Below are positions 40,476-46,561 of a stretch of DNA of 64,000 bases, piece after piece. A program made the translations under genes and the position numbers. Under the pieces are notes generated by a model. That model saw only the letters and a program-made list of their open reading frames with translations. It did not search any database and was not told the origin of the DNA. Source of the DNA: Oikopleura dioica (taxonomy: Eukaryota > Animalia > Chordata); assembly GCA_907165135.1 (NCBI GenBank), contig OU015568.1:2852001-2916000 (forward strand), written 5' to 3'. Position 1 is the stretch's first letter. The number at the start of each line of letters is the position of its first letter.

Positions 40476-42167
40476 TCAAACATTAAGAAACCTAGACAAA
40501 AAGATTTTTGCATCGATCTTCCAATTCAGCCCGTGCTTTCGCTTCGCCATTAATTTGCTCATCCAGCCGCTCAACTTCAGTCATCAGCATCTAAATGAAT
40601 GGACTTCGATAGAACAAGTTGAAACGCTGCATACCTTGACATCCTTGAAAATCTCAATCATAGCATCGCGATGGGCATTTTTTGGTCGAAGCTGGATTCG
40701 TTGTGTTCTGGACGCTTCTTCGTATTTGACATCTGCCTCGTGATCCCAGATGTTCAAGTCTATATTGTATTAGAAATATGATATTCTCGTCGAGTTTTTA
40801 CCAGTTTCAGACTTGCTCAAATAGCAAACTCCGCATCCCAACCGCGCTTTCTTTGGGCCCTTCGAAGTTTTTGGCCGTTTTTCAGCTAGAAATTAAGCAT
40901 CTCATCTTACAAACGGATTTACCTTTAATTTTTTGCCTGGAATGCCATTCTTCAAAGAAAACTTTTGATTTCCCATACTCAATTGGTTCAAAAATCGGGC
41001 TTTGAATCTCCTCTTCCTTGCTTTCTTCTGCCTCGATTTCTGGTTCTTTCTCAGATTTCGCGCTTTCCTCGCCATTCTTTGCGGTTTCTTCTACTTCAGG
41101 ATCAGTAAGAGCATCCGCAATAGAGTCAATTATCTTTCGCCCGGTCGATCTTGCCGATTCAAGAAGCTGAAGAGATTTTTCGTTATCCACTTTGATTGTT
41201 TTAATTACCTTTCTGGCTGTATCTGGCTCATCCTCTTCCTTGACATCATCGATTGTCTCCCTCATCTCATCGAGCTTTTCTAAACGATTGCGCGCTCAAT
41301 CCACCGTACTACACCAAATTACATATTCGCTGTCAAATTACCTTTGAATTCGTCTAAAACATTGGTGATGCCTGTGGTTTGCAATTTGGGAGAAAGTGAC
41401 GGCGGCGTGCCAGTTCCATTAGCTGCGGTATCATCGCGCGGAGACGAATTGAACACGACTCCTGAAAAAGAAAAACATGTGGTTGGAAAATGACACGAGT
41501 TGAAATTAATATTTCAAAAAATGAGAATTGATGGGTGAGAAAAAAATCTCTTCTCTTACCTCATAAACCTGCGAAGAAACCTGAGTCAGGGATCTGAAAG
41601 AGCCTTTAGATAACCCGAAGGGACTCTCCGGTTCCTGACTCAGGTTTCTCCACTGGTTACCAAGATAAAATCTGTAACAAAGTACCTTCAAGTTGAAGTT
41701 TCGGTACATTCTTCGGCAAGTCATTTTCTGGTGCAATAGTTTTTGACGAAATAGAAGACACCGCCGATGCTTTTGATAATCGACGCTTTGGCACTTCAGT
41801 TGGTCTAATGTCCCGTTTCTTCGATAAAAGCACTTTCTACATAAAATGAACCAGAATACCATCTATCGTTTTTAATAATAAATCAGGGGTAGACATAATA
41901 AACCATTCCTGGCGGTGCGACTTCAGATTCTATTTCAACATCTGTTTCGGGTCTACTCTTCGGGGTTGTTGGCGGAGCTGGAAAAGAAGAACCAGCAGGA
42001 GGGAAGCAAATACTTTTCGTTACTGACTTTCGTTCCGGAGAAACCTCCCGCTCAGTTGTGAAACCAGAGGTCGAGCCGTTTTCAGCATCAGAGAGCAAAT
42101 CCAGTTTTCTGGAGACTGAGAAATCTGAGTCGCGACCTCGACCAGGCGCTGATCGAGCTCTTTTCAA
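40476..42167 (-). CDS. Uncharacterised Ser/Pro-rich and coiled-coil protein; 5' end uncertain
   Basis: In-phase exon chain ending ..AMIEIFKDVK|MLMTEVERLDEQINGEAKARAELEDRCKNLLSRFLNV*; no family recognised. Confidence 0.5.
41575..41649. repeat. Intronic CCTGAGTCAG inverted-repeat element
   Basis: agaaacctgagtcagg..cctgactcaggtttct, perfect 16-bp arms. Confidence 0.8.
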
Positions 42168-43183
42168 GCGTCATCAAATTACTGCTTTTTGGCATATTAG
42201 CTCAAGAGTATTAGTTTATCTGAAAGTAGGGCGCATATGATAATGACAATACATCAATAAATTAAGGAACGCATGTCTTCTTTGCATAAAAGATGTTTGA
42301 CACCTGACCTGCGTCTTCTGAACGAAAATGAGCCTCTGCGGGAAGATCTCTGTTTTGGAACTAAAACTGCTTCGATAAGGGTTCGTTTTCTACCAATCTT
42401 TAGTCTTCAATCTTATTGAAGCAAGTTTCTTGTATCCGAAAAGATATATTTATCTCTCTACTTTGGGCGTGATTTTTCATCAGCGCGGCTAGAAAATCAC
42501 CCTAGAAATCATCATAATCCTGCTAAATCTTGTTGAATTTCACCGTTGTGGACATATTCTTTTTCTCAAAAAAAAGCTGCTTCCGTATGAATTTTGCGAT
42601 TGTGGATTTTGGAAAAAACCAGTCCAAAAATTGACCATGAAATATTCACGCTGCAGACACAAAGAGAAAAAATACAGTATTCGCCGGTGCTGCATTAGAA
42701 ATTCATAGAGCCAGCTTTTACGTGCGCTTTGAGAGAACATAATAGAATCCTCTTATTGGAAGGTTTATATTAAAAGCTGCAGCCTGCAAGAAATTAGAAA
42801 TTAATCGCGTCAAGCTCAAATGTCAAGAAATCATGATAACGAAAGGTGTTTTGAGAAGATTTGTTTTATTCTTTAGTGCCTCTTATCGTATCAACAAAGG
42901 TATCCTGAAATTTGACATGTGACTGTGAACGCAGTAGGACTCTACTTGAACTACGTTGATGTATGTTTGATGTTTCACAGAAAAGTGGTTGATGGGAGAT
43001 CGTTGAAAAATTTCACCATTTCTTATTGATGCTTTATTTAATTGTTCAATGAATTTTCTTGGTTCCTAAGGGTTGCTTTAATTCTAGATATGAGTAAGTT
43101 TTGTGGTTAAGTTCGATTCTCAAATCTTAAGTCAATTAAAAACTCATACTTGATGTTTTAAACATATTATTGTGGTTTTTCGT

Positions 43184-43542
43184 TCATAGAAAATTTAAAG
43201 AGAAGAACCCTTTTTCTAGATTTCTCAGTTTGAGAAAAGCAAGTTGAATTTGAAAGCATTTTCCTGACAACTTCTCTTGTAACTTGCACTCTTCGTGTTC
43301 ACTCATGTGATCAAGAAGCGTCTTTGAATTCTTCAATAATTGCTGATCTAAAATATTTTCAAAAACAAATTCGCTTCCCTCTTCTTACAAGCAAAATCGC
43401 GGCCAGGCTGAACATCTCTCGTCTTCATTTGAAATCGTCTATTTTTCTCGATATCAATCGGGGCGTATCCAGAGTACCTTGAGTTCCAAGATTCTACGGG
43501 ACTCATTAAAAGGAGAATGTTAAGAAAATGCTTCAAAAACAT
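43184..43542 (-). CDS. Possible secreted protein; further 3' exons likely
   Basis: MFLKHFLNILLLMSPVES signal-like start; GTAAG..TAG intron to QQLLKNSKTLLDHMSEHEECKLQEKLSGKCFQ. Confidence 0.35.
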
Positions 43543-44063
43543 CTTGCATCGAAATTGATTCTCCGCGCTTTATATGATTTACCCGGCAATAGATAGATTT
43601 CGGATGAATATTTGAAAACGATTGTCAATAATCAGAAATTCAATGAACCAATTCGACATTTTCTCGGTGATTTCTTCCGATCCCATCCGTAATAAAAATT
43701 CAGATTTGTCATTTTTGACAATTTAACGTCTTTTATTAACTCATTAATATCATCAAAATTGGACATTTTCGCTGATTTTGGCCTTGATGAACAATCTGTT
43801 CTTCAGTTCACTCTAAAACAGAACAGAAGTAGAAAGAAACCACCCAAGACCCCGATGAGCGAGGAAAACTTGCCCCTAAGCGCGTGAGTTGTCCCTGCGG
43901 TCGACTTTTAGTAGCAACACTCGCGGCGCATTTTCGATGGAGTTATTCTCGATGTCGCTCCAACTGAAACTTGTCATTAAAAGGGAGCATCAATTACACC
44001 CCTGGGTACTCTTTCAAAAGTGTTCTATATCTTCAGAAGGCAATTTTAGAAATATTAAAAAAA

Positions 44064-44389
44064 ATGTGGAAGGTAAGACTCATTTCTACAGAGATAATAA
44101 TTTGAAAAGAGGACCCTGACTGAGAGCTCTACACAGGTTTCCGAACTCAGAAATTAATTAAATTTCAGGGACTTTTTACTTCATTTGTTTTCCTGATGTC
44201 TTCAGCCGCTGCGAAACCTTCTAGTGATGGATATCAAATTCCTTATTTATTCAAGGTATGTCTTCATATCTTCTGATCATAAAATTGTCACAATTCTAGC
44301 GCTTTTCTGCACCTGTCCAGAGAGATCCAGGTCACCAGATCCCGTTCCTATTTAAACGATCTCCTGTTGAATCACTTTACGAAGACTGA
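44064..44389 (+). CDS. Neuropeptide precursor with two QIP(Y/F)LF peptides, 61 aa
   Basis: Exons 44064-44072, 44169-44255, 44300-44389 (phase-0 GT-AG introns): MWKGLFTSFVFLMSSAAA-KPSSDGYQIPYLF-KR-FSAPVQR-DPGHQIPFLF-KR-SPVESLYED*; AATAAA downstream. Confidence 0.85.
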
Positions 44390-44883
44390 TCTTTTCAACC
44401 CATTTTTTTCTACAAATAAAACTACTTTAGAGGAGAAAGCGCAATTATCACACGAGCAATTTAAATTATCCTAGTGGATTTTGATGGATCATTTCGTGAT
44501 TTCTGAACACGCTTTTTTCTTATTTTCGTTGAGCCGCGGGTACTTAGCCATTGTTCAAAAAAATAACAAGAGCGTTTCTTTTTGTCTAGCGAAACAAGTG
44601 CAGCTAGTAAAACGAGGCATCAGAGGCGTTTATTATTCCGCAAACAACGGGTCCACACGTATTTGTTCACATATTTTCGCAAACTCAGAAATTCCACATT
44701 TTCGTTTTCCATTTTTCGCCATAAAAATATCGGTTGCGCCCCGGGCACGAGCAAAAAAGGCTGAGACGATTGATTACTGAAAACCATTGAAGCGGATTAG
44801 CAAAAGAGATAAACAGAAAACAGTTTTGAAAGTAATGAAAAGGGCCTTTGAGAAGAGTTAAGTGCTTAGCACTTTTGACAATA

Positions 44884-46458
44884 ATGACGAGGGAGCTGTT
44901 TGTCGAAGAAAATAGAGGAAGCGTCAGAAGAAGAGTGGATAGAAATGGCAAAGAGAGGAAGCCAAATAGTATCAGAAAAAATGTTAATAGTATTGTTGGA
45001 TTCAAGAAAAGAAGGACGAAGAAAAATGATGAAGTTTATAGGGACATGGTAAGTCGGCTTATTTTATGGCTCAGTTAGGGTAAGGGTTCGATTAGGGTTG
45101 TGTGCAAAAAGACCCTTTTTGGGCAAGAAAGGAATCTAATATGAGAATTTTTATTTCAGAAAAATGTTCTTGGTGTTATTGATATTTTAACTATTATCCT
45201 CAATGTTCTTCATATTTTCATCGGCGCTAGAATTTTTTTCGCCTTTGGATCGATGATGGAAAAAGAAACATGCGTTGATGGTATCCGTGGAAACAATGCT
45301 CAACTGCTGGACGCAAGCGAGTTTACTGAAATCGGGCAGAATACGATGATCACCGGAGGAATCATGCTCGTTTTTGGGATCTTTGGTATGATTGTTACGG
45401 AGATGGAGACAGGAGTATTGATGTTGGTGATGACTACCGTGCGGATTTGCTTCTTTATGTATTCAATCTTGACGTCTGTGAGAAATTTCATCGAACCTGA
45501 GAAGGTCTGGTTGAGTTCAATGACTCTCGGCTCCAAATTTACGTATGAATTCGAGCAGGACAACCGCTGCTGCGGGTGGAATAATGTCTTCGACTACTGC
45601 GACCGGGACAAGATTTTGCAAATAATCTACGACGTCAGAACTGGGAGAAAGGATTTGGTCACGAAGCACACTCGACAAAGCTCGTTTTTTGAAGAATATG
45701 CCGATTCAAAAATATACAACTACGAAAGCTTTGAAAGTGAGATTTTCTACAGCTCCGAAATCGCGAGTATTTCAAAGCTGGAGGAAATCAATGATGGTGA
45801 GGATCCTTGCGAGCCGGATTCTTTAAATGAATACTGTGTCTGTGACGAAATGGAGAAGAATGACTGGACATTGAATATTCTTGATGAACCCTGTAGAACC
45901 GACTGCGAGGGAAATATCTTGTATGCACGAGAATCTTGTCCTGGGCATCATTCTAGAGGTAATAGACGTTATGATCTTTAGCCTGTAATCTTTACCCGAT
46001 TTTTCAATTTTAAAAATGAACACTGAACTTCAGACACGAAGGAAAAGCCCATTTGTCTGCTCAACGGCTGTGGGGACATTCTTCTAGCGCAGTGGAATTT
46101 CAAGCTTTGGCTTATCCGAATTCTATTTTTCTCCTTTATCGCTTCGATGATCGTCTATGCTTATTTCAAATACCAACTCGCCTTTTACTACATCGACGAA
46201 ATCAACAAGCGATGGGTCAGATTCGTTTCCGTCGCCCCCGAACCTCCCTTGTTAAAAGAAAATGAAGCTTGTGTCGTTGTTGATGGTCTTTTTGACCCAA
46301 GAAGAGTGTCACCGAAAGACAATTTGAAAGAAAAACTGCTTTTTCATTTCAATTCGGAATTGAGAAAGCTCAAAAAGAATGAAAAATTCGAATATGATTG
46401 CGATTCAAACTCGTCGGATTCTGATGAATCTTCAGATTCGCCAGAAACAGCTCTGTAA
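44884..46458 (+). CDS. Tetraspanin-like protein with enlarged Cys-rich second loop
   Basis: Three N-terminal TM segments, CCG motif (DNRCCGW), GC before TM4 (LNGCGDIL), TM4 LWLIRILFFSFIASMIVYAYF. Confidence 0.7.
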
Positions 46459-46561
46459 ATTCAAATTTTCTGGTTTAAAGACAATCAAAAGAAGCATTTT
46501 GTGTTTTCAGGTTAAAATGTTTATTTGAATATATACTGTATAAAATAAATAAGAACAGTTC

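Follow-up and report, generated by a model that had tools for sequence, protein, structure and literature searches.

A three-exon gene of Oikopleura dioica predicted to encode a secreted precursor of two peptides ending in Leu-Phe

The window analysed here is a stretch of 64,000 nucleotides of the Oikopleura dioica genome (contig OU015568.1, positions 2,852,001 to 2,916,000 of the forward strand), and coordinates given below without a contig name are counted from its first letter. Within the window, a gap of ~3 kb separates a minus-strand gene, which ends near 42170, from a tetraspanin-like gene starting near 45150. This gap contains a small gene of three coding exons on the plus strand, the model of which matched base for base when the sequence was read and the three exons were translated. 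The coding part of exon 1 (44064-44072) consists of ATG TGG AAG, encoding Met-Trp-Lys, the start of the predicted signal peptide, and is followed directly by gtaaga. Intron 1 (44073-44168; 96 nt, GTAAGA...TTTCAG, phase 0) contains an in-frame stop. Exon 2 (44169-44255; 87 nt, 29 codons) is followed by gtatgt, which opens the short intron 2 (44256-44299; 44 nt, GTATGT...TTCTAG, also phase 0). Exon 3 (44300-44389; 90 nt) has 29 codons and a TGA stop codon, and an AATAAA polyadenylation signal is found at 44415-44420, 25 nt past the stop on the same strand.

The predicted product has 61 residues: an 18-residue leader, KPSSDGYQIPYLF with Lys-Arg after it, a spacer, DPGHQIPFLF with a second Lys-Arg, and an acidic tail. 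After Met-Trp-Lys, the first 15 codons of exon 2 (44169-44213) encode a hydrophobic core and an SSAAA c-region, which complete the predicted signal peptide. Predicted peptide 1, KPSSDGYQIPYLF, occupies 44214-44252. The first Lys-Arg site is split by intron 2, with Lys as the final codon of exon 2 (44253-44255) and Arg as the opening codon of exon 3 (44300-44302). The spacer FSAPVQR (44303-44323) ends in a single Arg and leads into predicted peptide 2, DPGHQIPFLF (44324-44353). The second Lys-Arg cleavage site is at 44354-44359, and the acidic C-terminal peptide SPVESLYED with the TGA takes up 44360-44389. The original prediction had proposed a nine-nucleotide first coding exon in a three-exon structure, a leader ending in AAA, a pair of related peptides with LF ends and Lys-Arg after each, and an intron interrupting the first Lys-Arg. 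Each of these can be read directly in the sequence, at the coordinates given above.

The prediction had also described the gene as hidden from the list of open reading frames, and this holds: the list gives only a 26-residue and a 43-residue fragment at the locus. Nor is the gene present in the protein collections searched. With HMMER, the open frame holding exon 2 had no match among 1.84 billion representative proteins, a search in which short, fast-evolving precursors are unlikely to score. Word-based protein searches gave no candidate, either for an open frame of 50 residues around exon 2 or for a stop-free frame of 76 residues that runs from exon 2 across intron 2 and through exon 3 in a related lineage (lineage B, see below); these blanks are weak, as the same search missed a called 127-residue open reading frame with the same words on contig L032. 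In Pfam, no family matched any exon in either of two lineages at E up to 10. The searches of the spliced model were run exon by exon. In the literature searched, no description of an Oikopleura neuropeptide precursor was found. The gene is unannotated, being absent both from the protein databases searched and from the annotation of O. dioica itself.

Related genes are found in ocean metagenomes. A degenerate (Y/H)QIP(Y/F)LFKR pattern had 24 matches among metagenome contigs, 23 of which were discarded as chance: they lack a second motif and fall either in bacterial genes or in frames of no relation to the precursor. The remaining match is a marine contig of 1,583 nt (L017) that begins within exon 3 and reads PGHQIPFLFKRSPMEALYEN, then stop. 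Its neighbouring 357-residue open reading frame led to two protein clusters and an Okinawa protein, and from the members of these clusters to their contigs. The whole gene is found on three of them, L030 and L032, whose exons are identical (lineage A), and L031, which with L017 makes up lineage B. One related contig was assembled from Tara Oceans data. From the neighbouring gene, we infer that A and B are two other Oikopleura-type lineages.

The coding exons have the same lengths (9, 87, and 90 nt) in the Okinawa genome, lineage A, and lineage B, and GT...AG is found at all four borders. The run of ATG, 6 nt, and GT at the first exon and its border is conserved in both A and B. Intron 1 is 96, 42, and 47 nt long in Okinawa, A, and B, respectively, and the orthologous intron sequences are unrelated; intron 2 is 44, 46, and 45 nt. 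AATAAA follows the stop by 13-14 nt in A and B. Conservation of the QIPxLF-KR motifs in related species had been set beforehand as a test of the prediction, and the motifs, the exon lengths, and the four splice borders are all kept. Two further features were observed on these contigs. The 45-nt intron 2 of lineage B (L031 1462-1418, minus strand) keeps the reading frame, contains no stop, and has AAG instead of YAG as its acceptor; if retained, it would insert 15 residues, still ending in Lys-Arg, and give a readable product. On L030, several close copies of a CGACTCAGTCGGGA-like word are found at the contig end (2171-2060, minus strand), upstream of the lineage A gene, and may represent a small repeat element.

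Comparison with lineage B also bears on the start codon. As neither exon 2 nor intron 1 of this lineage has a Met codon, the ATG of the nine-nucleotide exon is the only possible start. A start at the Met within exon 2 of the Okinawa gene was rejected: the product would lack the leader, and lineage B does not have that Met. In all three lineages, the predicted leader has Met, a basic residue, and a hydrophobic core of 10 residues, over which Kyte-Doolittle values average 2.0-2.4; it ends in A-x-A (A-A-A or A-S-A), although its sequence drifts. Such a layout points to a cleavable signal peptide at the N-terminus, with its predicted cleavage position after the A-x-A.

The exons align with zero gaps and 69-71% nucleotide identity, while the introns and the 3' flank require gaps and are 43-50% identical in ungapped columns. 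Differences at the first, second, and third codon positions number 12/5/37 (Okinawa vs A), 15/4/32 (Okinawa vs B), and 7/3/22 (A vs B), a third-position bias (binomial test, p = 1e-7 to 5e-5 over the three pairwise comparisons). pS is 0.84 (saturated) and pN 0.14. The Okinawa product is identical to that of either lineage at 48 of 61 residues. For scale, the protein of the tetraspanin-like neighbour is 59% identical when Okinawa is compared with either lineage and 79% when A is compared with B. The topology of these identities agrees with the published split of Okinawa from Osaka/Barcelona (~25 and ~7 million years; PMC11067885).

Differences are not spread evenly along the precursor. Between Okinawa and A, the 18-residue leader accounts for eight of the 13 amino-acid replacements, and 26 of 27 residues are identical in the two peptides and their Lys-Arg sites. 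Invariant in all three lineages are GYQIPYLF (the core of peptide 1), the whole of DPGHQIPFLF, the Lys-Arg after each of them, the Arg preceding Asp-Pro, and the position of the stop codon. The spacer reads F(S/A)APV(Q/A)R and the acidic tail SP.E..YE(D/N) across the lineages. Purifying selection concentrated on the mature peptides, a feature expected of prohormone precursors, is thus present. The substitution pattern shows purifying selection maintaining the exon-intron structure and the reading frame in three deeply diverged lineages. Structure and invariant peptides together argue strongly that the gene is real and conserved.

The peptide motif is restricted to this locus. In the whole genome (64,281,565 bases, 19 contigs), a degenerate QIP(Y/F)LFK pattern has two matches, both at the locus, on the same strand, and 101 nt apart; reversed control patterns have 0 and 1 matches. 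This arrangement is far beyond chance. Exons 2 and 3 are each single-copy in a genome search. All nine aligned codons of the two repeat units differ in DNA, seven of them synonymously and two by replacement (Y/H and Y/F), and the duplicated unit takes in the Arg codon across intron 2. The pair bears the signature of an old internal duplication maintained at the peptide level.

Upstream of the ATG, four short non-coding blocks are invariant in the three-lineage alignment despite saturated neutral divergence, and they are taken for candidate promoter elements. Block 1 (GAAAGAAAC..CCCAAG.C.CCGAT, invariant columns) at 43832-43856 is a candidate cis-regulatory element. It is followed on the plus strand by block 2 (AACACTCGCGGC) at 43916-43927, block 3 (TCGATGTCGCyCCAACT) at 43949-43965, and block 4 (CACCCyTGGGTACT) at 43997-44010, 54-67 nt before the ATG. 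The exact form of block 3 is unique in the genome, its one-mismatch matches being in no excess over control, and block 4 is unique as well. With both found at this locus only, blocks 3 and 4 were rejected as repeats or shared regulatory words. The CCCnnGGG core of block 4 is reminiscent of COE/EBF-type sites. In each lineage, a pyrimidine-rich AG is found roughly 25-35 nt upstream of the ATG and could be a spliced-leader acceptor. An Rfam search over 42000-45500 found no RNA gene in the gap. The lone sub-threshold match, to the C/D-box snoRNA-like sR17 at 44805-44853 on the plus strand (18 bits against a gathering threshold of 36, E 0.54), is probably a chance match unrelated to the peptide gene.

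The layout of the precursor suggests how it would be processed. The 18-residue leader (MWK, hydrophobic core, and A-A-A) would direct the product into the secretory pathway and then be removed. A kexin-type proprotein convertase would cleave after both Lys-Arg pairs, and a carboxypeptidase would strip the basic residues. An extra cut after the conserved single Arg preceding Asp-Pro is possible; a basic residue is found eight positions upstream of this potential cut. The released peptides would be KPSSDGYQIPYLF and DPGHQIPFLF, or a 17-residue form of the latter that includes the spacer, with free Leu-Phe carboxyl ends. Amidation is not expected because the Lys-Arg sites are not preceded by Gly, the precursor reading -YLF-KR and -FLF-KR. 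The X-Pro start of each peptide would guard against aminopeptidases. P_proprotein domains (PF01483), which mark kexin-type convertases, score above cut-off at about 7 loci of the genome. An exon-by-exon search of the genome for the 7B2 chaperone family, taken as a neuroendocrine marker, gave no match, and its controls were equally silent.

Two related units, G(Y/H)QIP(Y/F)LF, each with a conserved dibasic site after it, are found in one precursor in all three lineages. We consider it likely that the locus is a real, unannotated, single-copy coding gene and that its product is a secreted prepropeptide cut into LF-ended neuro- or endocrine signals. Such peptides would most probably act via G-protein-coupled receptors. 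Secretion, cleavage, and a neuronal role are here predicted from the layout and conservation of the precursor.

The same gene-level support fits equally well a real, conserved, secreted propeptide that is not a neuropeptide and comes from the house-secreting epithelium, gut, or gonad. Its peptides might serve as a pheromone, cue spawning, act locally in a paracrine way, or be no more than a by-product from the processing of a small secreted protein, and Ciona peptides of the same kind act on the ovary too (PMC12441681). Repeated invariant peptides, dibasic sites, and X-Pro N-termini in a short precursor, however, make up the classic layout of neuropeptides and peptide hormones. The peptides are neither cationic nor amphipathic and so do not look antimicrobial, and in the nearest studied tunicate LF-type peptides are neuronal. 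A non-neural origin is unlikely on this evidence, and it is the alternative that deserves the most weight.

The relation to the downstream neighbour has to be considered as well. This gene (45150-46460, plus strand) matches Oidioi.mRNA.OKI2018_I69.PAR.g9239 of Oikopleura dioica, which places the window on scaffold PAR of the Okinawa assembly OKI2018_I69; the g9239 product has a weak, tetraspanin-like Pfam match. In the Okinawa genome, g9239 is in tandem with the peptide gene, about 0.7-0.9 kb downstream on the same strand, so that the peptide exons might be g9239's own 5' exons, or else an open reading frame upstream of it, rather than a gene of their own. The peptide frame, however, closes with a conserved stop and then AATAAA, and the annotated g9239 protein starts with an N-terminus of its own and includes none of the residues of the peptide exons. 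In lineages A and B, moreover, the two genes are on opposite strands and meet tail to tail, with their stops 100-120 nt apart, which makes a shared transcript impossible there. The tetraspanin-like gene is found at L017 165-1238 (minus strand), L030 217-1341, L031 154-1227, and L032 324-1718. Since the two genes converge in A and B, the peptide gene is not an exon of the tetraspanin-like gene, and a place for the peptide exons in g9239 was rejected on this orientation and on g9239's own product; we regard it as highly improbable. The tandem order in Okinawa, as against the tail-to-tail order in A and B, reflects a local inversion. The tetraspanin-like copy is one uninterrupted open reading frame of 357-360 residues in B and in some A contigs, and Okinawa g9239 has an intron near 45980-46100.

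That the exons are intergenic DNA in which open frames and splice-like sites coincide by chance, or a conserved element that is non-coding and gives no protein, would agree with gene finders having made no call and protein databases having no match, but it can be given hardly any credence and is already contradicted by the conservation pattern: third-position substitution bias in all three pairs, exons free of indels while intron lengths vary, a conserved ATG, stop, and four GT/AG borders, peptides invariant at saturated synonymous divergence, and a genome-unique motif duplicated with synonymous codon changes.

For the preferred reading, a secreted precursor of LF-ended signals, the Ci-LF family of Ciona is the closest known kind. 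The cilf precursor gives CiLF-1 to -8, including FQSLF, YPGFQGLF, and HNPFLPDLF, and these peptides are non-amidated (PMC12441681); they carry no amide mark in Table S1 of that paper. The claim that non-amidated LF-ending peptides are established in Ciona is borne out. Like the Oikopleura pair, Ci-LF peptides are tunicate peptides of 5-13 residues with a free Leu-Phe end, released as related copies from one precursor. The two differ in several ways. The copies number eight in Ciona and two in Oikopleura, and the residue before Leu-Phe is S, G, or D in Ci-LF while it is aromatic (Y or F) in Oikopleura. Nothing in the Ci-LF peptides corresponds to the conserved core Q-I-P-(Y/F) and, unlike the Ci-LF precursor, the Oikopleura precursor has only 61 residues. 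The likeness to cilf is one of kind, the searches above having found no homology to any known precursor, and the Oikopleura peptides would be the larvacean counterpart, in kind, of the Ci-LF peptides.

A resemblance to neurotensin had been suggested from the P-Y-L-F end. Neuromedin N ends in KIPYIL and neurotensin in RRPYIL (PMC3855394). As in Oikopleura, two tandem related peptides are found near the C-terminus of the precursor, with Lys-Arg after each and a free carboxyl end, and I-P-Y is common to Oikopleura peptide 1 and the neuromedin N end KIPYIL (PMC3855394). The ends themselves are different, being Pro-Tyr-Leu-Phe and Pro-Phe-Leu-Phe in Oikopleura but Pro-Tyr-Ile-Leu in neurotensin and neuromedin N. 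Oikopleura peptide 2 has Phe where these have Tyr, and no basic residues are found beside the Pro in Oikopleura. The Oikopleura precursor is also about one third the size of the vertebrate neurotensin/neuromedin N precursor. The Pfam family of pro-neurotensin/neuromedin N had no match with any exon in two lineages at E up to 10. With different C-terminal residues and no Pfam match, the likeness proves superficial.

Other Ciona peptides are similar in a more general way. Ci-NTLP and Ci-YFV/L, compared here by the examples pQLHVPSIL, NKLLYPSVI, and DDEPRSYFV, are lineage-restricted and have a hydrophobic, non-amidated C-terminus with Pro 2-4 residues from the end. They end in -IL, -VI, or -YFV, whereas the Oikopleura peptides end in -LF, and they have no core in common with them.

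Receptors for LF peptides form a urochordate-specific clade, which reportedly includes presumable O. dioica sequences (PMC6475428). The two Oikopleura peptides may be the natural ligands of these orphan receptors, a tentative proposal that we consider possible but on balance doubtful. If it is true, this would be the first peptide-receptor system common to larvaceans and ascidians and absent outside tunicates. A weaker alternative to this proposal is that the locus is a tunicate relative, strongly reduced, of the gene for neurotensin/neuromedin N. Tunicate neuroendocrinology gains a specific ligand candidate for those orphan receptors of larvaceans that have been placed in the LF-receptor clade. 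Genes for peptides that begin with a micro-exon may be a systematically missed class in the compact Oikopleura genome. The present one is minimal, about 0.6 kb including the promoter blocks, for the study of peptidergic signalling in a chordate with very few neurons. If the reading holds, the 61-residue precursor, the four short conserved blocks of the promoter, and the life cycle of 5 days would together make for a very compact and genetically tractable chordate peptidergic system.
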